This document shows, in pieces, positions 1-13,792 of a stretch of 64,000 bases of DNA. Below the pieces are notes generated by a model that made no database searches, was not told the DNA's origin, and saw only the letters and a program-made list of their open reading frames with translations. This DNA comes from Eutreptiella sp. 'Long Island Sound 2002'. Taxonomy: Eukaryota > Protista > Euglenida. The position numbers and the translations under genes were made by a program. Every line of letters begins with the position of its first letter. Positions within the stretch are counted from its first letter, which is position 1. Where the stretch lies: positions 172,980,001 through 173,044,000 of the forward strand of contig OZ038378.1 of the NCBI GenBank assembly GCA_964036045.1. The letters run 5' to 3'.

Positions 1-329
1 GGTGGAGACCCAATGGCGTGCTCCCATTGTCTGGTGACAAGCGGGGCAGGGGCGCTCGTCCCCGGCGAACCCCAGACCGTCCCGGCGCGCCATCGTGCGG
101 AGGTGTGCCCCCCATCGGATTAAGCCACGCTCGGTAACGGCGGCATAGACCCCCAGGGACTGGCGCTCCCCGTGCTCGGGGGCCTCCATATGAAGATCCC
201 AAAGACGGCGAGACGACGTCTCGACTAGACGGTCCAGGTTATGAACCTGGACGTCGTTGTGGGTGAAACAGACCTGGGGTGTTTGGAGCCCCCGGATCCA
301 CCCCACCTCGGGGCGGGCCCCGGAAGCCT

Positions 330-780
330 GCTTCTTGGCTTCCCCGTCGGCTACGTCCAACAGGGCGTCCAGGAAAGTGCCGACCCTGTGGGACTACAGG
401 TGCTGGGGCGCACTGAACCCCTCGGACAGAAAACCCCGGCACGCCCGCAGCAGGTCGTCCGACAGCGGGGAGGATCCGGGGTTGCGGGACTGGACGGCGT
501 CTATATAGCCCTTGCTGTCGTGGAAGGACCACTGCCGGCCTCGGGTGCCCCACACCACCCGGTGGGCGCCACGTGCCCGCAAAACCTCCCAGGCCACGTA
601 GAGTTCTGCCTGGTAGGACCCGTCTACGTGGACCGGGATGGGGATCCGGTAGATCCGGTGCCATCCTGTCGTGGGGTCCGCCACCACCGGCCCGCCCCCA
701 GCCGTGTGGTTGGGATACCAGGAGGCGTCCTGCACGAAAACCGCCTCTGCAGGTACGCTCTGCAGGGTGACCCCCTCGGA
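330..780 (-). pseudogene. RNase H domain of the retroelement
   Basis: VFVQDASW..GGG, SYQAELYVAWEVL, FHDSKGYI, HL*SHRVG..DVADGEAK. All four acidic catalytic positions are present. TAG at 394-396, after which the frame stays open to base 1. Confidence 0.9.
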
Positions 781-1399
781 GTGTACCTCCTGGGCCCACC
801 GCATGCAGCGGGGCCACGGGGGGAGGGACTTTGGTCCATGAAACCGCGACGGCCAACCCGCTCTGCGGGTGCTGGACCAGTCCCGATAACCGGCCGCCAG
901 AGCCGCGTGGCCGTCGTTTGCCTCGTCGATGGTCGTCGCCGCGCCCAGTGGGTGTTTGCTCACCTCCACGGCGTGGCTCCCCGGAGCGGGCCAGACCCGG
1001 ATTTCCATGAGCCACGTATAGCGCAGGAACCGGTCATGGTCCGTGGGGTGGCAATCACAGTCCGCCAGGCCCCGGAGTACGCAGGGCATGTCCGGGTGGA
1101 ACCGCCCGAGGGCGCACATATGCCCCCACCGGGCGGAAGCCCGGGTCAGAGGATTGGGGTGGTTCAACTGCCGGGCGTAGTTGAGCACAAACGTGGTCAA
1201 CACGTCCGGACCCAGAGGGCGAATGCCGGAGAGCCCCGCCTGCACGGGCCCGAGCAGGCGGTGCGCTGGCAGGCTTTCCCCCACAATCGCCCGGAGGGCG
1301 GAGATGGCGGGGTAGTCCGCGAGGTGCCATACCCGGACCGGGGGGGGCCGAACCCCGGCCTGGAAACGCGCCATGCTGCCCGCCTTCGGGTTGTACATG

Positions 1400-2440
1400 G
1401 CCGGGGGGTATTGCGCCCGCAAGGACTTGATGGGGATAACTGCGGAAGCACGCCGCGCCGCCATCTTGAACTTCCGGAAATCTTCCTTGTGATACGTATG
1501 TGGGAGGGCGTGGCGCCCCAGGGAGCGGATGTAATCCTTCTCCGTTGGCACGGGCAGCCGAACCCCGTTCATCAGAACCGAGGGAACCCCGTACCGTACG
1601 CGCTGCCCGTCCATCCAGGTCTGCAGGACGTGCATTTTCGACACGTCGGACCCCAGAGCCACCGCGTCTTCTGCGGCGGGGAGGGCTCTGGCGATGGCGG
1701 ACACATCCTCCGGGGAGCCCCCGAGCTAGACCGTATCGTCGGCCCAGGCCAGACTGTGCAAAAGGCCTGCTGGGGTGAGCACCCCGGGGTAGTTCCGGGA
1801 CACCATCTTCGCCCTTACCTCCCCCATAGGCGCGTAATCCAGCGGGGACAGAGGGCAGTCCTGTCCGGACCCTGCGTCGAACCACCCCTCGGCATGGTCG
1901 ACATCATCCGTGCCGCCCATGTCCAGGCGCATGTCCTCCACCAGGGAGCGGTGCAAGTGGCACAGCTCCGGGCCGTAACCCACCACCTGGTGTACAGAGT
2001 CCCGGGACACGTGGTCTGGGGAACCGAAAGCGTGTCGGACGTCGTCGAGGACGGGCCAGGCTTCGCCCCCGGAGCCCCAGCGGTACCAGAAAAAGTCGTG
2101 CAGTACCCTGAGGAAGTCCCATATGGACGTTCCCGGCCATAGGGCGAATTGGCTGGGGGGGAGGAACCCGTGCTCCCGAAGCCAGGGCTGCTCCTCCTCC
2201 TTTACCACCAGACCCACCACCTTGCGCAGAAGGACTAGGTTGGTGAGTGGGCGGTCATTGGCCCCAATGCCATGGGGAGGTTTCTTAGGGAGGAGGTGGA
2301 GGTCCCCGTGCGAAAGGGCCTCCAGGCGTTCCCCCCGCATGTAGCGGTTGACGACCTCGCATACAATGGCGAGACCGTCGTCGTCCATCTCCCGCAACAT
2401 CTAGTACTGCAACTGGTCGCGAGCCGGAGCCGTGTTGCCG
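1400..2440 (-). pseudogene. Reverse transcriptase domain (non-LTR type) with in-frame TAGs at 2401-2403 and 1726-1728
   Basis: TAPARDQLQY*ML, LLPKK..NDRPLTNL..RKV, SQFAL..GTS, VLDDVRHAFGSPDH, GSGQDCPLSPL, LAWADDTV*LGG, YIRSLG. ORFs 2401..2988, 1726..2400 and 394..1704 share one frame. Confidence 0.95.
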
Positions 2441-3114
2441 GTGCGTTGGAGTATGCGGCGGAGGTGGGGGACCGTAGCCGTGGGCAACCCCAGCGGCTGT
2501 GTGGGCGTGACCCAGCCCGTGAGGGCCCGGACGTCCCCCGGCGTCAGCTCCCTCAGCGTCTTCTGGTGTCGGTGACGCACCTGGTCCAGGGCCACCTTGG
2601 CCCTGGCACGCGGCGCCACGTCCACTTGAGCGCAGAACCGCGGTTGGACCGGCGGCGTGCGAGCGGGCCCGTACAGGTGGCGGAAAGCCCCACGGGATGG
2701 TCTGGCGAAGGGGGCCACCTCCGGGAGATGGGAGAGATACCGTTGCAAGTTCCCCACCTCCCAAGCTTCCGCCAGGTCCTGGCGGAGATCCAAACGCTCT
2801 TTGAGCGTGTCCAGTGACTCCCACCACCGTGGGCACCGCTTAGCGTGTGCCAGGAGCTGACGGTGGACCTGGTCCACACGCCCTGGGAGCTCCCCGAATT
2901 CACGAGGGGGGGCATGGGCCCTTTCCACCGCTCGTATGGTGGAGGCCAGGAAATACTCGTACAGGGCCGTCAAACTCGCGGGCCGCAAACCCTCCTCCCG
3001 GCGGCCGCTGACAAGGCCGCATGGTAGCTGCCCGTGACGCCCGGGTCACGTATCTGGAAATGCCTGGCACGCAGCCGCACCGGGGGTCTGTCTTCCGGGT
3101 CCTGGAAATCCCGG

Positions 3115-3790
3115 GCGTCCCACACCACCGGGCGGTGGTCAGAGGGGAAGGGGGAGGCCTCGTCCACCCACAGATGTCCCTCCTTTGGGGCAGGGCCTTG
3201 TAGCATGTGGTCAATCACCCCCACGCACCCCCGTCCGTCGGTCCACGTGGGCGCCTCGGCGGTGGGGTGATAGCGGACTAGGCCAGTGTCCTGGACAAAC
3301 TCCTCCCACAGGATGGTGAGGGCAGCCGGGGCCTGCCGGAAGCCTGTCGCCCATCCAGGGTTGGCGTTGAGATCCCCCATCATCAGGGTATACACCCCAC
3401 GACGGGGGGCCATGACGCCCAGGACCCATGCTAGGATGCTCCGCACCATGTCCAAGTCCTGGTCGGCCGGGAAATACACCACCACCGCCAGGATGTGTCC
3501 CCCCCGACAGTGGTATTCCAGGGCAACGCCGCGCTTGCTGGAGTGCATGTCCCGCCATACCTCCCGAAAGGTGGGATGCCACCGCACCAGCAACCCCACC
3601 CCGGCTGCCGGATGCGCCGCGGGGGTGAATGTGGCCCAGAACATGGCGTGGACCACCTTGAGGGCGGGCAACTTGCCCACTTCCTGTAGTCCCACCAAGT
3701 CCGGATAACCCCAACCGCGCAGACAAGACCCCAGGGACGGCATCTTACCCATTAGGCCTCTCCGGAGGTTCAGGGTGACAGCCCGAAGGC
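3115..3790 (-). pseudogene. AP endonuclease (EEP superfamily) domain of the retroelement
   Basis: Motifs VTLNLRRG, DLVGLQEV, GVGLLVR, VVYFP, MMGDLNA, TWT..VIDHML, SDHRPVVW in ORF 2970..4400. Confidence 0.95.
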
Positions 3791-4446
3791 CCCCGAGTCC
3801 GCGGTGGTCGCTGGCGGTGCCCCCAGAGAGGGTGTCAAGCGTCCCCCGGCCAGTGGGGCCCGCCGCGTGTTCCAACCGGCGGAGGACGGCTTGCCGGACC
3901 TTGGTGGGGAGCTCTAGCGCCGTGGAGCGCCGCAAATACCGCCCCAGTGCCCGCGCGTCGATGTTGGCCGCAACGTAGGCGGTGGAGCTGCTGGACGCAG
4001 CTTTGAACACCACCCGGCCGCGACTGTACGTGGACCTGGGTACCCACGTCACGGATCCCTCAGCCCCGGGCGGGTGGGTGACGCCCCCCCACCGCTGTAC
4101 ACCTGCACCGAGTGGCCGCCTGAGACTTGGTACACGGCCATGTGGGCCGCCCACTGCTGTAGGATGGTGGGAAGGCGCCAGTCTCCCTGAAAAAGAGACA
4201 CGTGCCCCAGCGCGGGGTGGAGGCCCGGTAAACACTCCAGCGTCGTGGCCACGTCCCGCACGCCGCACATGGCGCCAGAAACGCCGAATACAATTCCCCA
4301 CTGGGCAGAGTGGCGCCCCGGACACACAGAGTCCCGGGCCAGAAGCTTGAGCTGGCCGTGGGCCACGGCCCCCGGAGAGAACACGTCCCCGGCGTCCCAC
4401 CCCAGAGTGACTGGCGCGGGGAGGGGAAGTTCGTCTGGGACGCCCC

Positions 4447-7400
4447 TTACGGGCTGGGCCCCCACGCGGGGGGCGCCACCGGGTTCACCGGGCCGGGCGG
4501 GGCTGTGGCAGCGGCCGCTGGGACTGGTTCCCCGTACCAGGGCCCCGCGTACCCCGAGGGGGGCGCTGTCGCGTCCGCGGTCGGGGCCGGCGGCCCGTAT
4601 GGCTGGTGCTGATACGGCGCCTGTGGGACGCTCATCCCCTGCGGGGGCATGGCCGCCCCGTAGTGGGGCGCCCGGCCGTCCCCCGGGTAGCGGGGATCCA
4701 TGGGCGGCGCTCCCCAGCCGGCGGTGGTCGGAGGGCAGGCCACCACCGACTGATGCGGTGGAGCCATGGAGTGCATCTCCGGCCGAGGGTAGGGGGAGCG
4801 CTCCCCATAACTCGTGGGGGGGTCGCACGACCGGTAGTCCTGTCCCCAGCCGTCGTCCCGGGGGAGCCATTGTGGTGGCTGGCGAGGTTGCTCGCTCCGC
4901 GACGGCGCACGGTAATCGTAGCGCCCATCCCACGGGCCCCCCACCGACTGGGGAGTATGACGCGAGCCTCCTCGGCGGTAATCGTCCTCCGGTGAGGGGT
5001 ATCTGCCCCCTCGTCGCGGGGTGTAGTCTCCCTCCAACCGATGGGAGGCCCGCGGGGGGGACTAGGAGGGGGACCGGCGCCGTCTCCGACCCTCGTCCCC
5101 GGCCCCGTCCCGATCACGAGCCCGGATCAAGCCTTTGGGTCCTGCCATAAGGTCCCCACTACGCATCCGCTGGAGCACGGCATTGCTCTTTTCCACATGG
5201 TGGGCCCGCAGCAACCCACCGGAATACGGTTGTTTGTTGGCCTTGGCCCACTCGTAGGTGAACTGCTTGTCGGCGTCGCCTCCGCCCCCCTCCAAGGCGG
5301 AGGCAGCCTCGGGCCGCACGCCCACGAGTGCCCAACCCCCATCCTCCGTGTGGCATAGCTGCCCTTCGTCCTTGATATAGGACACACGGAAGTCCCCGAA
5401 GGCCTTCTTCAAGACCATGCCCAGCCGCCCCGGGGATAGGGGGTAGATGGCCTCCGGGGTGTCGCGCGGGTTGACGCGCCACCGGACCATGACGGCCACG
5501 GAGTACGTGTCGTAGTCCGAGCCGCCTTTGCCCCTGCCGGGGGATTTGCCGCTCCCTCCGGCCTGGTTGGCCCGGGACGCTGCCGCTACCTTGGCTGCCC
5601 CCTGAGAGTCAGGGGCCGGGGTTTGCGATCCGGAGGGCTCCGCCCGGCGGTCCCGGACAAACTCCCTGACCAGTTGGCCCAACTCGGGCCGCGTGGGCAG
5701 GAGCCTGCCCAGGGCCGTATACTGGGCCCGCAGGTTGCTTTGGGGGAACTCCGGGGGGAGGTCCAGCCTGGTAGCCAGGTGCAGATGAAGCTTCTGGGCC
5801 TCCCCCGTCTGCGAGTCCGGTGGTACCTCATTGAGGTACACCAAGAGGGCGCGGAGCTCGTCCCGCCCCGGTGTGGGGGTTGCCGCACCGGCCGCATCCG
5901 CGGCAGTGGGAGTGGTGTCCCCCCCGGAGCGGTTCCCGGGGGTGACCGCGACGACGGGCTTGCCGGCCGAGCGGACCGCCGGGGAGGTCTCTGGCCCTTC
6001 GTGCGGCGTTGGGGCCCTGCCCATCGGGCGGGTGTCCGCGGACAACCCCAGCAGTGGTCCCTGTCCCACAGCCTCCGTCGGGAAGTGCAGGACGGGCTGG
6101 ACCGGGACCCGCAACCGACGTGAGAGCTGCTCCAGGGACGGGGGGGGGGGTCCACCCGCAGGACCGCGGCGCAGACCAGGGTCGCACAGATCTCCCGGAA
6201 ATTCGGGTTCGCCGTGGAGGGCGGCCCGTACCCCGCGGGCACCCAGCCCCGCAGCGCCCGCTCCACCGCGGGCTGTGAGATGTGCTCGTCCCGAACAATC
6301 TGCACAGCCTCGAGGATGGCGGGGAGGTGCCGGCTGAGGCGCTCGTCCACTGCCCCCGCGACATCGCGTGCCGCCCGCTGGGCGTCGGCGAGCTGTCGGC
6401 GGAGGCTACTGCCCTCCTCCTCGAGGGACCTCGTGCGGGAACGCTGCCGCACCAGTTCCCCGCTGACCGTGGCGTGGTCACGCCGCATGGAGGCCAACTC
6501 CCCCTCGGAGCGATGCAGGTCCGCACGGACCCGCTGCAGCTCCTGCAGGCGGCGATCCTGCTCGGAGGACAGGGCCTGGCACGTGGCCTGGGCGTCTTCC
6601 AGGTCACGCTCCAGGTCCTGGAGACGGGACTCCCACAGAGGGGGACGGCGTCCCGCGTCCATGGGGGGGCGACCCCCTGCCCCCGTAGACTCCGGGTACC
6701 AACGTTCACCCGGGCTCCTGTCGGGTACGCCGTCCCGGTGGGGCACGCCCGCCGCGGTGACAGGTGGGCATAGGAGGCCAGTCCCGTCACCCAGAGACAC
6801 ATGCACCCCGGCTCTCCCGGGCGCGGGCGCTTGCGGAGTCGCAGGTACCGGGCTCGCGTGTGAGCCCCCGGCGGAGCCCCCGGAAAGGATCTCTAGAGTA
6901 TTAGAGATGGGCGGGGGAAACCCCGACTGGGCCGCGCGATGGGCAGCCACCAGTGCACAGCCCCCGTCGGACGGCGCACGCCGACTGTCGACTGCGTGGG
7001 TGGTGTGGCGGTCTGCCGGCATGGAGCCGCCCCCGAGACCCGAGCCAGCAGGGCCCGGGATCGCCAGCGGGGTGGGAGAGTCTTCCACATGCTCCCCTAC
7101 TGGGGATTCCGCGTCGAACTCATATATGGAGGTACCCCCAAATTTGATTTCGCGGCTGACCCCCGTCGGGTTGGAGGGGGATTCCCCCTCGGGGGTATGT
7201 GCCCCCCGAGGGACCGCGTCGCCCCCCGCGGAAGGGGCCGCGCCGGTTGTAGCCCCCGCACAGGGCTCAAGCAACCGCCAAGGGTCGGAGACCGTTGGAT
7301 ACACACCGTCCACGTTCACGTAAGGTTGCGTGGGGTCGTCATCCCTGGCTGCGTCCGCGTCCACAACCGGCGAGGCCCCAGCGCCCGCCGGGACGGGAAG

Positions 7401-8420
7401 GTCCGCGGCGGCTGCACCACCCCCGGTGCGGGAGGATACCCGTGTCCAGGACGCAGCGCTCAGAGGGGCTTCGGTGCCCCGGGAGGCAAGCAGCGCCAAA
7501 ACGGGGGCTGAGGCCCACGATGGCGTGATATCGCCTAGCAGCTCCCCCAGTGCCTCCACCGTGGTAATCGGTAGGGTGGAAGCCTCAAAGGCACCCCGGA
7601 GGACGTCCAGGGGCCAATCCCGGATTTCAGGCAACCCCTTCGGTAACGGGGTCACCGGTACCCCCGCGCTGGCGCCTCCCACTTGACGGGAGGCCCACAC
7701 CATTAGTCCTGCCCAAAGTTCGTTCCCCGTGCCGGAGATGTGAGGCAAGACCTCAGTGGGCCGTTTGGGCAGAGCCCAAAGGATTCGTACCTGGTCCTTG
7801 GCCCCCAAACGACCCCAATCAGCTTGACAGCCGGGGGAGAGAAAGGGAGCGATTGGACGTAACGCCGCGTTGGCTGTGCTGTGGTGCACCTGCGGTGCGC
7901 TGGCGGATTCGGCTAGGGCGTCATCCACCTTCAGGATCCGCGCCAAGCGCTTCCGCAGCCGCAGGGTGTCGAAAGGGGCGCACCCCGAGATGACCCAACG
8001 GGCTAGATCCAGATGACGGGGATGCATCGTACTCCCCAGGTACTCGACCAGAGGTCCCCCAGCCGCCACCATAAGGGGGACGTCCTGGGAGACGAAAGTT
8101 TGGGCGTCGTATGACCCAGTAACCGTGGCCGTGAGGCACAACCCCCGTGGAGTCAAGATAACCCCCATGGACGTAATGGCGGTGATCACCCCCACGCGCC
8201 GGGCCCAGCGAAGGGCGTCCGGCACCTCCTCTGGGCGCCCTCGGGCGACCTCCGGGAGGGAATCCGCGGCGGCCTGTAGCAGCGCCTTGTCGCTGGCCAC
8301 TGACCAGCTATCCCTCAGGCGGCCGTGCGCCGCCGAGGACCCCTGCCGGATGGCATCCAGCAATGGGGAGTCCCGGTAGTCGGGTTCTCCGGGAAAAGCC
8401 AGGTCGACAAGGCCACTCAT
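4447..8420 (-). pseudogene. Gag/ORF1-like 5' part of the retroelement coding region (unknown N-terminal domain, Pro/Ala linker, coiled coil, RRM-like domain, RS/Pro-rich region)
   Basis: ATG at 8420 (ORF 5586..8420). Frame change in the G11 run at 6140-6150 into ORF 5062..6114 (..LRVDPP-PSLEQLSRRLRVP..). In-frame TAG at 5062-5064, then ORF 4447..5037. Heptad-rich segment WESRLQDLERDLEDAQATCQALSSEQDRRLQELQRVRADL.. at ~6300-6640. Confidence 0.75.
5240..5510 (-). other. RRM-like domain followed by an Arg/Ser-rich tract
   Basis: YSVAVMV..LSPGRLGMVLKKAFGDFRVSYI..GWALVGVRPEAASAL..FTYEWAK resembles the RRM pattern (RNP1 GFAFVEF..EEA..A, terminal VEWAK). It is followed by RARDRD..RRRRRSPS*SPPR. Assigned by pattern only. 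Confidence 0.5.
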
Positions 8421-8499: not shown

Positions 8500-11190
8500 C
8501 AGAACGCACGTTGGGAGTGCCCTCTAAACCCCCACGGGGCGTCCCTATCCCTCCGCGGCCCCGGCAAAACCGGAGGGACCCGAGTGTGCCCGCCGCTATG
8601 TGGGTGGTGGACCTCTCCGTGTGCCCAAAAACCCCCACAGGGCGTCCCTATCCCTCCGCGGCCCAGGCAGGACCAGAGGAACTCGGGTGTAACCGCCGCT
8701 GTGTGGGGAGGGACCCCTCCGCGTGCTTTACTACCGCCCTTGCGGCGCCCCTATCCCTCCGCGGTCTAGGCAGGACCGGAGGGACTAGGGTGCGACCGCC
8801 GCTGTGTGGGGGAGGGACCCCTCCGTGTGCCCTCAAAACCCCCACGGGGCGTCCCTATCCCTGCGCGCCCCATGCAGGACCGGAGGGACTCGGGTGTTAC
8901 CGCCGCTGCGTGGAGGACGGACCTCACCGTGTGCCCCCAGACCCCCACGGGGCGTCCCTATCCCTCCGCGGCCCACGCAGGACCGGAGGGACTCGGGTGT
9001 AACCGCCGCTGTGTGGGGAGGGACCTCACCGTGTGCCCCCAAACCCCCACGGGGCGTCCCTGTCCCTCCGCGGCCCCGTCAGGACCGGAGGGACTCGGGT
9101 GTAACCGCCGCTGTGTGGGGGAGGGACCTCTCCGTGTGCCCCCAAACCCCCATGGGGCGTCCTTATCCCTCCGCGGCCCAGGCAGGACCGGAAGGACTCG
9201 GGTGTAACCGCCGCTGTGTGGGGAGGGACCTCTCCGTGTGCCTCCGAACCCCCACGGGGCGTCCCTATCCCTCCGCGGCCCAGGCAGAACCGGAGGGACT
9301 CCGGTGTAGCCGCCGCTGTGTGGGGGAGGGACCTCTCCGTGTGCCCCCAAACCCCCCCGGGGCGTCCCTATCCCTCCGCGGCCCAAGCAGGACCGGAGAG
9401 ACTCGGGTGTAACCGCCGCTGTGTGGGGAGGGACTCATTCGTGTGCCCCCAAACCCCCACGGGGCGTCCCTATCCCTCCGCGGCCCCGGCAGGACCGGAG
9501 GGACTCGGGTGTAACCGCCGCTGTGTGGGGAGAGACTTCCCCCGTGTGTCCCCAAACCCCCACGGGGCGTCCCTATCCCTCCGCGGGCCATGCAGGACCG
9601 GAGGGACTCGGGTGTAACCGCCGCTGTGTGGGGGAGGGAACTCTTCGTGTGCCCCCATACCCCCACGGGGCGTCCCTATCCCGCCGCGGCCCAGGCAGGA
9701 CCGGAGGGACTCGCGTGTAACCGCCGCTGTGTGGGGGAGGGACCTCCTCGTGTGCCCCCATACCCCCACGGGGCGTCCCTATCCCTCCGCGGCCCAGGCA
9801 GGACCGGAGGGACTCGGGTGTAACCGCCGCTGTGTGGGGGAGGGACCTCCTCGTGTGCCCCCGAACCCCCACGGGGCGTCCCTATCCCGCCGCGGCCCAG
9901 GCAGGACCGGAGGGACTCGGGTGTAACCGCCGCTGTGTGGGGAGAGACTTCCCCCGTGTGTCCCCAAACCCCCACGGGGCGTCCCTATCCCTCCGCGGCC
10001 CAGGCAGGACCGGAGGGACTCGGGTGTAACCGCCGCTGTGTGGGGGAGGGACCTCCTCGTGTCCCCCCAAACCCCCACGGGGCGTCCCTATCCCTCCGCG
10101 GCCCAGGCAGGACCGGAGGGACTCGGGTGTAACCGCCGCTGTGTGGGGAAGGGAACTCTTCGTGTGTCCTCAAACCCCCACGGGGCGCCCCTATCCCTCC
10201 GCGGCCTAGGCAGGACCGGAGGGACTCGGGTGTAACCGCCGCTGTGTGGGGAGAGACTTCCCCCGTGTGTCCCCAAACCCCCACGGGGCGTCCCTATCCC
10301 TCCGCGGCCCCGGCAGGACCGGAGGGACTCGGGTGTAACCGCCGCTGTGTGGGGAGGGACTCATTCGTGTGCCCCCATACCCCCACGGGGCGTCCCTATC
10401 CCTCCGCGGCCCAGGCAGGACCGGAGGGACTCGGCTGTAACCGCCGCTGTGTGGGGGAGGGACCTCTCCGTGCGCCCCCAAACCCCCACGGGGCGTCCCT
10501 ATCCCTCCGCGGCACAGGCAGGACCGGAGGGACTCGGCTGTAACCGCCGCTGTGTGGGGGAGGGACCTCTCCGTGTGCCCCCAAACCCCCACGGGGCGTC
10601 CCTATCCCTCCGCGGCCCCGTCAGGACCGGAGGGACTCGGGTGTAACTGCCGCTGTGTGGGGAAGGGAACTCTTCGTGTGTCCTCAAACCCCCACGGGGC
10701 GTCCCTATCCCTCCGCGGCCCAGGCAGGACCGGAGGGACTCGGGTGTAACCGCCGCTGTGTGGGGGGGGGGGACCTCTTCGTGTGCCCCCAAACCCCCAC
10801 GGGGCGTCCCTATCCCTCCGCGGCCCAGGCAGGACCGGAGGGACTCGGGTGTAACCGCCGCTGTGTGGGGGAGGGACCTGTCTGTGCGCCCCCAAACCCC
10901 CACGGGGCGTCCCTGTCCCTCCGCGGCCCAGGCAGGACCGGAGAGACTCGGGTGTAACCGCCGCTGTGTGGGGGAGGGACCTGTCTGTGCGCCCCCAAAC
11001 CCCCACGGGGCGCCCCTATCCCTCCGCGGCCCAGGCAGGACCGGAGAGACTCGGGTGTAACCGCCGCTGTGTGGGGGAGGGACCTCTCCGTGCGCCCCCA
11101 AACCCCCACGGGGCGTCCCTATCCCTCCGCGGCCCGGGCAGGACCGGAGGGACTCGGGTGTAACCGCCGCTGTGTGGGGGAGGAGCGTGT
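8500..11190. repeat. Tandem array of ~26 copies of a 103-bp monomer in the retroelement leader
   Basis: Core CCCCACGGGGCGTCCCTATCCCTCCGCGGCCCAGGCAGGACCGGAGGGACTCGGGTGTAACCGCCGCTGTGTGGGG recurs every ~103 bp (ORF-track starts 9470, 9573, 9676, 9779, 9882, 9985, 10088), with a short variable segment per unit. Confidence 0.97.
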
Positions 11191-12109
11191 CGTGTGCCCG
11201 CATTAATCCTTGGGGGTTACCCCCGACCCCTACGGGCCGACCCCGTCTCCGCGCGTCCCATGCGGGGCCGGGGGACCGGGGTGTCACAGACCCCGCGGGG
11301 GTTCGGGGGGTCGTGGTAACTATCAGTCCTTTTCTGTACTTGACAGAAACCAGGAGCCGCCCACGCGTAGCCCTTGCGGCCGCAGTGGGGGTCCCCCGGC
11401 GCCGTGGCCGGCTTGGGGGTTGGGGGGGGGGGTAGTCCTACCCCGTTCCTATCTCTTAGCAGCGGCAGGCAAGTAAGCAGGCAGTACCGGGGGTCATAAC
11501 CCCGGGGTAACAGTAGCAGGGACTCAACGTGAGTCCTCTTAACCAAGAACAACCCCAAATTCCGCCGGGGCTTAACTCCCGAACGAAACGGTATTTGGGG
11601 CCCCCGCGGGCCTTATAAGCCCGCGGAGTGTGCTGAGGCGTGGCTACCAGCACATAAAGTCTGGCTTGTCATACCCATTGTTGGGCTCGCCTCAGCACGG
11701 CCGGTCGAGTCCGGCTCTGGGGGGTGCGCACTAAACTGGCCCCGGGGGGGGGGCATTTACCCGTTAAGCATTAGTTATAGCAGTATGCACTATTTATTAC
11801 GTTAAGTTTTTACTCAGCGCTTGTTTTACCCCGCAGACATGCCCCTTCCAGTGGTGCGCTCACCTTTGGGGCTGCCTTTGGGGGGCCCGGGGCTTTTACC
11901 CGGACCTCCGGCCCTCCCTGGCTGTTGGCCGGAGGCGTACATTATACAATACTGCGGTTCTTTCAGTGACGTACATACATTACTTGATACATACACATCT
12001 GGGGCCTGGGGGGGATGGCACCCCCCCTTGGATCGACAAGAACGCGTCACCGGGGGGCCTCCCCTTAATTCACTCTTATCTCTTATCTCTGTGGTCGCCC
12101 TGCATGGCC

Positions 12110-12375
12110 GAGGCAGGGACGGGGGGGCCACCCCTTATTTCAGAACTGATTCGGATACAAAGGTCTTTCCACCCCACCTGGGCGGAGGACCAGGGACTGG
12201 GGGGCCACCCCTTATTTCAGAACGGAAGCGGATACAAAGGTCTTTCCACCCCACCTGGGCGGAGGACCAGGGACCGGGGGGCCACCCCTTATTTCAGAAC
12301 TGATTCGGCGTATCAAGGTCTTTCCACCCTGCATGGGCGGAGGACAGGGACCGGGGGGCCTCCCCTTATTTCAAT
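12110..12375. repeat. 77-bp tandem repeat (about 3.3 copies, with more degenerate copies to ~12495)
   Basis: CCACCCCTTATTTCAGAAC.. at 12128, 12205, 12282 and a variant at 12359. Confidence 0.9.
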
Positions 12376-12641
12376 ACAGCCATTCACGTACCGGACCGGG
12401 GGACCTCCCCTTATATCATTCCAAAACTCCACGCGTCGGTGCCTCTGCCCCGCACGGGCCAATGGCCAGGGACGGGGGGCCCCCCCTTGTTTCACAGCAC
12501 TTCCTGGGAAGCCAGACGCCGAGGCTGCAGGCAGGTGCCATTACCCCGGCGCAGTGAGCACCGTAGCGACAGGCGCTGGCCTTTACCTCCGCCCCGGCGC
12601 TGTCTCCCCTTTATTCCACCGCCTCTTCCTTCCGGTCCCGT

Positions 12642-13185
12642 CGGATAGGACGAGATCCCCACCCCATGATGCGCCTGTGCAGAACACAAGGAGCAGTGGG
12701 CCGGGGTAGGGGTGCGCACATGAGCCCTGGAGAGGGCTAGGTCACGGGGGGACCCGGGTTATTCCTGCATACCGCCACCCCCCGGTGGAGCCCGCCCTGT
12801 GCCATCGTGACTCTCCCCTGTCTCCCCTTTATTCCACCACCTCCCAGCTCCGGTCCAGGCATCCCGCCGGGTGCAGCAGGGCACGTGGCTGTGAGGCCTG
12901 ATGTCACGGTTGCCCCGCATTGCATCGCAGGGCAGGACCGGTAGCCCCCCGTGACATCAGGCCCCTGGCCGAAGGCCATAGTGGTTGTGCCCCAGGCCCG
13001 GACGGGCGTCGGATAGGACGATATCCCCACCCCATGATGTACCTGTGCAGAACACAAGGTGCAGTGGGTTGGGGTAGGGGAGCGCATACGAGCCCTGGAG
13101 GGGCTGGGTCACAGGGGGACCCGGGTTACTCCCGCATACCGCCACCCCCCGGTGGAGCCCGCCCTGTGCCATCGTGGCTCTCCCA
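12642..13185. repeat. Diverged ~175-bp direct duplication
   Basis: GGATAGGACGA.ATCCCCACCCCATGATG..CCGCCACCCCCCGGTGGAGCCCGCCCTGTGCCATCGTG.CTCTCCC at ~12642-12818 and ~13012-13185. Confidence 0.85.
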
Positions 13186-13260
13186 CGGTGGCCGGCGAGG
13201 GGTGGGGCGCGCGATCCCGCGCCCTGGCCGCCGCGGCTGGACCAGGGCACCCCCCAGATT

Positions 13261-13341
13261 GCGTGTTAGCCCGGGGGGGACCCCCCCCGGTTTCACCCCC
13301 ACACCACGGTGAGGCCACGCGCCCCTGGGCAGCTGTGGGGG
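13261..13341 (-). ncRNA. HDV-like self-cleaving ribozyme (predicted) at the 5' end of the retroelement
   Basis: Minus strand reads P1 CCCCCAC / J1/2 AGCUGCCCAGGGGC / P2 GCGUG / P3 GCC / L3 UCACCGU / P3' GGU / P1' GUGGGGG / UG (P1.1 with L3 CA) / AAA / P4 CCGGGGGGGG-UCCCCCCCGG / J4/2 GCUAA / P2' CACGC. All helices pair, in canonical HDV order. Confidence 0.85.
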
Positions 13342-13342
13342 T

Positions 13343-13388
13343 CACGCACGCACGCACGCACGCACACGCACGCACGCACGCACGCACA

Positions 13389-13450
<62 letters not shown>

Positions 13451-13520
13451 CACACACACACGCACGCACGCACGCACGCACGCACGCGCACACGCACGCA
13501 CGCGCACGCGCACACGCACA

Positions 13521-13556
<36 letters not shown>

Positions 13557-13570
13557 CACACGCACACACA

Positions 13571-13602
<32 letters not shown>

Positions 13603-13647
13603 CACGCACGCACGCACATACGCACGCACACACACACACACACGCAC

Positions 13648-13740
<93 letters not shown>

Positions 13741-13752
13741 CACACACACACA

Positions 13753-13784
<32 letters not shown>

Positions 13785-13792
13785 CACACACA
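13343..13792. repeat. Compound (CACG)n/(CA)n microsatellite, ~450 bp
   Basis: Directly visible. Confidence 0.99.

Follow-up and report, generated by a model that had tools for sequence, protein, structure and literature searches.

A probable HDV-like self-cleaving ribozyme at the 5' end of a 15-kb APE-type LINE in a Euglena-like alga

Gene content and organization of the element

The window (i.e. the whole 64-kb stretch of DNA that was analysed) carries on its minus strand a LINE copy of which ~1.6 kb lies beyond the window start. The element is organized in the order candidate ribozyme, repeat-rich 5' UTR (~5 kb in total), ORF1, endonuclease–reverse transcriptase (RT)–RNase H-like–CCHC region and (TCC)n tail, and its G+C content is 65–71% along its length (Table 1). 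A complete copy on another contig (locus L087) measures 14,975 bp, and alignments between copies extend from one base ahead of the ribozyme as far as a shared 3' end. The L087 copy has a 9-bp target-site duplication (TTGAAGTCT) on both sides, the duplication at locus L085 is AACA, and each of the seven 3' ends observed carries a (TCC)n tail.

Table 1. Features of the LINE copy and its candidate ribozyme in the window (5' and 3' refer to the strand given)
Feature	Position	Strand	Remarks
RT and RNase H-like region	1..2988	-	extends past the window start; stops at 2401-2403 and 1726-1728
APE-type endonuclease frame	2970..4400	-	domain at residues 232-422; PF03372, E 7e-9
ORF1-like frame	5586..8420	-	944 aa; coiled-coil stretch; relatives on other contigs
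Tandem array in 5' UTR	8517..11183	-	25.9 units of 103 nt
5' UTR, non-array part	11184..13260	-	~180-bp block twice; three 77-bp units (12114-12373)
P2, 3' strand (CACGC)	13261..13265	-	5-bp P2 forms the outer pseudoknot with the segment before P3
J4/2 (GCUAA)	13266..13270	-	putative catalytic C at 13269; C-N-R-A context, directly before P2 3' strand
P4 hairpin	13271..13290	-	G run and C run, 8 bp, 4-nt loop; run lengths differ between copies
UG of P1.1	13294..13295	-	pairs with A and C of L3 (13310, 13311): A32-U47, C31-G48
P1, 3' strand (GUGGGGG)	13296..13302	-	G40-G46; partner of 13341-13335
P3	13303..13315	-	3 bp, GCC (13315-13313)/GGU (13305-13303), closing L3
L3 (UCACCGU)	13306..13312	-	7 nt; U at position 1, G at position 6
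P2, 5' strand (GCGUG)	13316..13320	-	pairs with CACGC
J1/2	13321..13334	-	14 nt, an unusual length; environmental relatives have 2-3 nt
P1, 5' strand (CCCCCAC)	13335..13341	-	C1-C7; cleavage predicted 5' of 13341, which is LINE base 1
(CACG)n/(CA)n microsatellite	13343..13789	.	directly upstream of the element

The ORF1-like protein reaches 1,175 aa among the copies. The RT region of the window copy (2400-397, minus strand) is 97–98% identical to the intact L087 frame, and its two in-frame stops indicate that this copy is dead as a LINE, with the candidate ribozyme intact. In the 1,393-aa frame we find RT motifs (i.e. RPLTN, DDVRHAFGS, GQGCPLSP and WADD), an RNase H-like D-E-D pattern and a CCHC motif. 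Pfam did not recognise an RT in this frame; its RT relatives include proteins at the RVT_1 cut-off. A profile of the RT family matches the solved structures of R2 (2e-18) and human L1 ORF2p (1e-10), and in a protein atlas the RT falls among clusters with RVT_1 and RNase_H. At L087:13579-19512 the endonuclease and RT frames are in phase with one stop between them, so that the ancestral ORF2 was probably a single protein of ~2,000 residues. Judged from its predicted proteins, the element is an APE-type non-LTR retrotransposon with a divergent RT.

The repeats of the non-array 5' UTR include a ~180-bp block that occurs twice on the minus strand (13184-13007 and 12817-12639), with a core, CACGATGGCACAGGGCGGGCTCCACCGGGGGGTGGCGGTATGC, that is almost invariant in ten copies. 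This core is as conserved as that of the ribozyme and may function as a promoter or bind protein. We also looked for a second ribozyme where the 5' UTR has an internal ~368-bp duplication; the duplicated part proved to be the ~180-bp block only, and the ribozyme is single. The 5' UTR also contains a hairpin (12897-12963, core 12902-12956) with perfect 15-bp arms (GGCCTGATGTCACGG ... CCGTGACATCAGGCC), whose central ~55 bases have a word depth several times that of their surroundings in organism A. Dozens of contigs end at 12902 and 12956, so that the hairpin piece must also exist solo or within another, more abundant repeat.

Related LINEs and host

A related LINE family is represented at loci L095 and L096 by RTs with 34–36% identity to that of the window family, and one of its protein clusters has 385 members. 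Both loci contain a long tandem array of ~94-nt units ahead of the ORFs (L095:1-3300 and L096:18202-21299), and kilobase-scale 5' UTR repeats thus appear to characterise this LINE group. We find no HDV-like motif in the sequences of L095 and L096, which probably exclude the 5' ends; L095 starts inside its array.

Chlorophyll a/b-binding protein genes, one with a product of 1,519 residues, lie beside the related LINE at L096:23260-24908. Light-harvesting polyprotein precursors are known from Euglena; the gene at L096 agrees with them and supports the view that the host is probably a euglenid. The preliminary description had placed the element in a non-trypanosomatid host, which is correct; the implied phylogenetic distance is smaller than that wording suggests, as euglenids are the sister group of kinetoplastids.

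The HDV-like fold

All parts of the HDV-like nested double pseudoknot are found on the minus strand from 13341 to 13261 (81 nt; ribozyme position i is 13342 minus the coordinate). P1 consists of seven Watson–Crick pairs without mismatch, and J1/4 is AAA. The preliminary description had claimed every element of this fold on the minus strand, a P1.1 altered relative to HDV (CA...UG in place of CC...GG) and a P1 that starts with a C-G pair; each of these details was located, the opening pair being 13341/13296.

The first pair of P3 (position 13315) is G.U in the window copy and A-U in all nine other copies. The G at 13315 also differs from nearly all contigs of four public runs, in which the family base is A.

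The best nested minimum-free-energy structure of the segment differs from the ribozyme fold, with a z-score of -1.85; nested folding without pseudoknots is uninformative for an HDV-like fold. Competing structures are possible through the 14-nt J1/2 and the G/C homopolymers of P4.

Rarity of the fold and recognition by independent models

We searched both strands of the window with a generic descriptor consisting of (i) a 7-bp P1, a J1/2 of 0–30 nt, a 5-bp P2, a 3-bp P3 and an L3 of the form U...CG.; and (ii) a 2-bp P1.1 in which one or both pairs are G-C, a P4 of 4 bp or longer, C-N-R-A and then the P2 3' strand. The candidate is the single match. Block-wise dinucleotide shuffles, which keep the local dinucleotide content, gave 18 matches in 15 of 2,400 replicates, i.e. 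0.0075 per window, a figure that is somewhat favourable because the descriptor was composed after the candidate had been seen. Spread over 128,000 start positions, this rate corresponds to an expectation of ~6e-8 for a chance fold starting exactly at base 1 of the element. When real sequence of related contigs was scanned (272.6 kb, or 545 kb over both strands), the descriptor matched copies of the same LINE only. A relaxed descriptor, which allowed many G.U pairs and no P4, was dropped after GT microsatellites had flooded its output.

Rfam searches of the window returned no HDV family, either at the gathering score or at E<10. For the consensus-like L087 copy at E<10, the best match is RF00094 (HDV_ribozyme) with 16.2 bits, below its gathering score of 50, and RF02682 gives a consensus-like copy of the family 11.1 bits, below its gathering score of 44. 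Rfam models cannot score pseudoknots, and the 14-nt J1/2 is penalised by them. We also built a covariance model (R1) from 17 environmental sequences of four unrelated families (see below), with no member of the window family among them. Model R1 has one match in the window, which is the candidate (17.4 bits, E ~0.025), and gives consensus-like copies up to 22.1 bits; it puts the P1 5' strand in the wrong place owing to the long J1/2. The HDV-like fold claimed at the outset is thus statistically unusual against shuffles and is recognised by a covariance model of other families.

The 5' boundary and conservation among copies

The ORF1-like protein has 16 relatives with 77–94% identity on long contigs of one ENA assembly, and we examined ten of these loci with 10-kb flanks (L085–L094). 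The ribozyme is present at nine of them; none was found in the 10-kb upstream flank of L094. In all nine, similarity to the window begins at ribozyme base 1, and the DNA upstream of the element is unrelated between copies (i.e. the window copy and the nine others). A LINE of more than 13 kb with its 5' end at the ribozyme had been proposed, together with a check that other copies begin at the same base; the ten copies start at the first P1 nucleotide, the nine others at the same C as the window copy, and the length of the complete copy agrees with the proposal.

GT-rich microsatellites host six of the ten copies (the window copy and five of the nine others), and the (CACG)n/(CA)n microsatellite next to the window copy is probably its insertion target. 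The base preceding C1 is A in seven of the ten copies and G, T or C in the rest, a variation that places it outside the element. At L087, this A sits between the target-site duplication and the element and looks added.

Public runs mapped on the region indicate that the LINE family is extremely abundant. One DNA contig ceases to match at 13341, and three contigs under another organism label have loose ends at 13341. One contig of an RNA run crosses the cut site into a different flank (loose end at 13343) and represents either uncleaved RNA or DNA in the library; the run was kept as contigs, in which RNA ends are not visible.

Variability over the ten copies amounts to 1.5% of cells at ribozyme positions 22–48, 4% at bases 82–200 and 12% at bases 201–330. 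A block of the 5' UTR at about bases 170–210, without a ribozyme fold, is equally conserved. Two changes within helices preserve pairing, namely A/G at position 27 (13315, A-U to G.U) and C to U in P2 of L086 (giving G.U). Disruptive single changes occur in five of the nine other copies (L085, L088, L089, L091 and L093), and the strict descriptor is passed by four of the nine in addition to the window copy. We found no true double compensatory change among the ten copies, which is attributable to their youth, as they differ from the window by 3–15% over the first ~350 bases.

Locus L085 has another HDV-like candidate (L085:4617-4700), 1.9 kb upstream of the LINE copy and directly after a (CCAAAA)n repeat. 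It occurs once in the sequences examined, with P1 CCTCCAC/GTGGAGG, the sequence ACC-TTGACGT-GGT followed by CA, and a weak P2. Its CA would make a P1.1 that departs from the main family in each of its two pairs.

Environmental families with the same core

We scanned metagenome contigs with the pattern CCTCAMCGTGGTG-N6-TG-N15-35-GCTAA, in which the P1 5' strand, P2 and P4 are left free. The scan yielded 84 loci, ~50 of which have fully complementary P1 and P2 helices and represent at least four unrelated families with quite different helices (P1 of CCTGATC/GATCAGG; CCCGCTC/GAGCGGG or CCCACTC/GAGTGGG; GTCCTGC/GCAGGGT; and CCCTGGC/GCCAGGG). Examples among L002–L084 are L007:4380-4462 and L021:1132-1203. 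Most of the remaining loci are chance matches (e.g. apparent plastocyanin gene ends).

In 17 environmental sequences, P1 and P2 are 100% paired and both sides change in 13 of the 15 pairs, values that none of 500 shuffles equalled. These sequences were chosen for their pairing, so that the weight lies on the compensatory changes and not on the percentage paired. Covariation was counted on the environmental families only, since MAFFT misplaces the P1 5' strand of the window family with its long J1/2. The U-A and G-C pairs of P1.1 occur in 17 of 17 sequences, their bases being fixed by the search pattern, and the first pair of P1 is C-G in 16 of 17.

Two of the families are close to RF02682 (HDV-F-prausnitzii): family B passes the gathering score (53.8 bits) and family A is just under it (41 bits). 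Family A occurs on very AT-rich (21–29% G+C), eukaryote-like contigs and often adjoins (GT)n. Family B comes from metagenome contigs, and its L021 copy, which follows the 3' end of an 18S rRNA gene at a distance of ~500 nt, passes the RF02682 gathering score. No RT was seen within 4 kb of the environmental-family loci. As far as these contigs indicate by sequence, the core ACC-UCAMCGU-GGU...GCUAA is the mark of a widespread HDV-like subclass in uncultured eukaryotes.

Interpretation and alternative explanations

Our preferred explanation of the segment from 13341 to 13261, to which we give a probability of about 0.8, is that a Euglena-like alga harbours a ~15-kb APE-type LINE whose first 81 nt are a self-cleaving ribozyme of the HDV-like type. 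From the fold, its rarity, the boundary in ten copies, the conserved core and the coding capacity of the element, we infer catalysis and a role in 5' processing. In the proposed sequence of events, the LINE would be transcribed from its own 5' region or within a longer host transcript, and the nascent RNA would fold into the nested double pseudoknot. The C of J4/2 would then catalyse a break 5' of C1, giving a unit-length RNA with a 5'-OH; a comparable release of element RNA from an upstream transcript is described for R2 and L1Tc (PMC4035085). Target-primed reverse transcription, frequently at GT/CA microsatellites, may then use the unit-length RNA as its template.

Two other accounts deny that the fold itself matters. 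One is that it arose by chance in a G+C-rich sequence with G and C runs. At 65–71% G+C helices arise easily, the energy of the nested fold is unexceptional (z -1.85) and Rfam does not call it; such a coincidence is nevertheless very hard to credit, because only 0.0075 matches are expected per window, 545 kb of related real DNA contains none except the element copies, and in ten copies the fold and the element start at the very same base, with a core that is invariant between them. Somewhat less improbable, although still unlikely, is the view that the first 81 nt are kept as an internal promoter or 5' terminal recognition element with a dead or irrelevant fold, the shared 5' end being a fixed transcription start. 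A fixed start site would equally predict a common 5' end in ten copies, and the neighbouring 5' UTR blocks without a ribozyme fold (about bases 170–210) are as conserved. The Pr77 sequence of L1Tc is moreover described as both a promoter and a ribozyme (PMC3383444, PMC1874656). A promoter, however, has no need for 7, 5, 3, 2 and 8 pairs in the HDV arrangement together with GCUAA; this arrangement is rare by chance and is detected by a model of other ribozyme families. The promoter and ribozyme roles are also compatible with each other.

A further alternative concerns descent: the ribozyme could be a specific homologue of Pr77/L1TcRz, with both ribozyme and LINE inherited from an element of the ancestor that euglenids and kinetoplastids share. 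A probable euglenid host, indicated by the light-harvesting polyprotein gene next to the related LINE, makes common descent with L1Tc/ingi plausible, and the element combines an APE domain with an RT and an RNase H-like region, in the same order as L1Tc/ingi elements. The two ribozymes share 17 of 22 bases, identical P3 and GCUAA, a C1-G pair and a 32-nt spacing. Against this, no fewer than four unrelated environmental families, those of AT-rich eukaryotes among them, have the core too, and some match RF02682, a family named after a bacterial ribozyme; such a core may thus be widespread or have arisen by convergence. P1, P2, P4 and J1/2 have nothing in common with Pr77, and the RT relatives (all unnamed ENA or Logan proteins) include no named L1Tc or ingi protein. 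We regard specific homology as doubtful, and slightly more doubtful still the wider proposal that the element is a euglenid member of the lineage leading to L1Tc/ingi, with a Pr77/HDV-like hallmark that predates the euglenid–kinetoplastid split. If this proposal were true, the hallmark would have been kept for several hundred million years, during which the element would have expanded to 15 kb and become a specialist of microsatellites.

Under the preferred reading, i.e. a self-cleaving ribozyme at the 5' end of the LINE, the novelty lies in the host group: HDV-like ribozymes at LINE 5' ends are already known (R2, RTE-type and trypanosomatid L1Tc/ingi elements), and euglenids would be a new host group for them. 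In our literature searches, no paper dealt with HDV-like ribozymes of Euglena. For the annotation of a repeat-rich genome it is helpful that the 5' end of this very abundant 15-kb LINE family is placed to the base, and the finding opens the question of whether the Pr77 hallmark predates trypanosomatids. Copies that are co-oriented in host introns could also cut host pre-mRNAs.

Comparison with known LINE ribozymes and HDV-like families

The published Pr77 (oligonucleotide in PMC1874656, primers in PMC3185411) reads CCCUGGC-UCAGCCGGCC-ACC-UCAACGU-GGU-GCCAGGG-UC-(23 nt)-GCUAA-GCGCC... and agrees with what the preliminary description had stated for L1Tc, namely a C1-G pair and an L3 like UCAACGU (PMC1874656). 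In the stretch of 22 bases that runs from P3 through P1.1, Pr77 and the family consensus agree at 17; apart from this stretch and GCUAA, the two are unalignable. Common to both are P3 (ACC/GGU in the consensus), GCUAA as J4/2, C1-G as first pair, the U-A pair of P1.1 and a spacing of 32 nt between the P3 3' strand and GCUAA, and their L3 sequences are one base apart (UCAMCGU). Like Pr77, the candidate occupies the first ~80 nt of an APE-type LINE in a host of the Euglenozoa, and its predicted cut precedes base +1. R2 and L1Tc carry 5'-terminal HDV-like ribozymes that cleave immediately before base +1 (PMC4035085, PMC3185411).

By contrast, the P1, P2 and P4 sequences are unrelated to those of Pr77, and J1/2 is 14 nt here and 3 nt in L1Tc. 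P1.1 has two pairs here, one being described for L1Tc, and P2 is here a simple 5-bp helix. Unlike L1Tc, the element is ~15 kb long, with kilobases of tandem repeats in its 5' UTR, mainly GT/CA microsatellites as targets and a (TCC)n end. The term 'Pr77-like' used in the preliminary description is therefore true as to resemblance, but the resemblance is not specific: at least four unrelated environmental families, some matching HDV-F-prausnitzii, have the same core, and the core alone does not show kinship with L1Tc.

HDV-like ribozymes at the 5' ends of RTE-type LINEs were reportedly described by Ruminski et al. in 2011. R2 (PMC3774820) and RTE-type LINEs likewise have an HDV-like fold at the non-LTR 5' junction, where it frees the element RNA from a co-transcript. 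R2 is specific to a site in 28S rDNA and uses a restriction-like endonuclease, whereas the element described here has an APE endonuclease and an RNase H-like region. Compared with R2 and RTE elements, it also prefers microsatellites and is several times longer.

RF02682 and environmental families A–D share the core ACC-UCAMCGU-GGU...UG...GCUAA with the window family, and C-G is the usual first pair of P1 among them. The window ribozyme differs from them in its long J1/2 and in having neither a spacer base between P2 and P3 nor a GA after CUAA.
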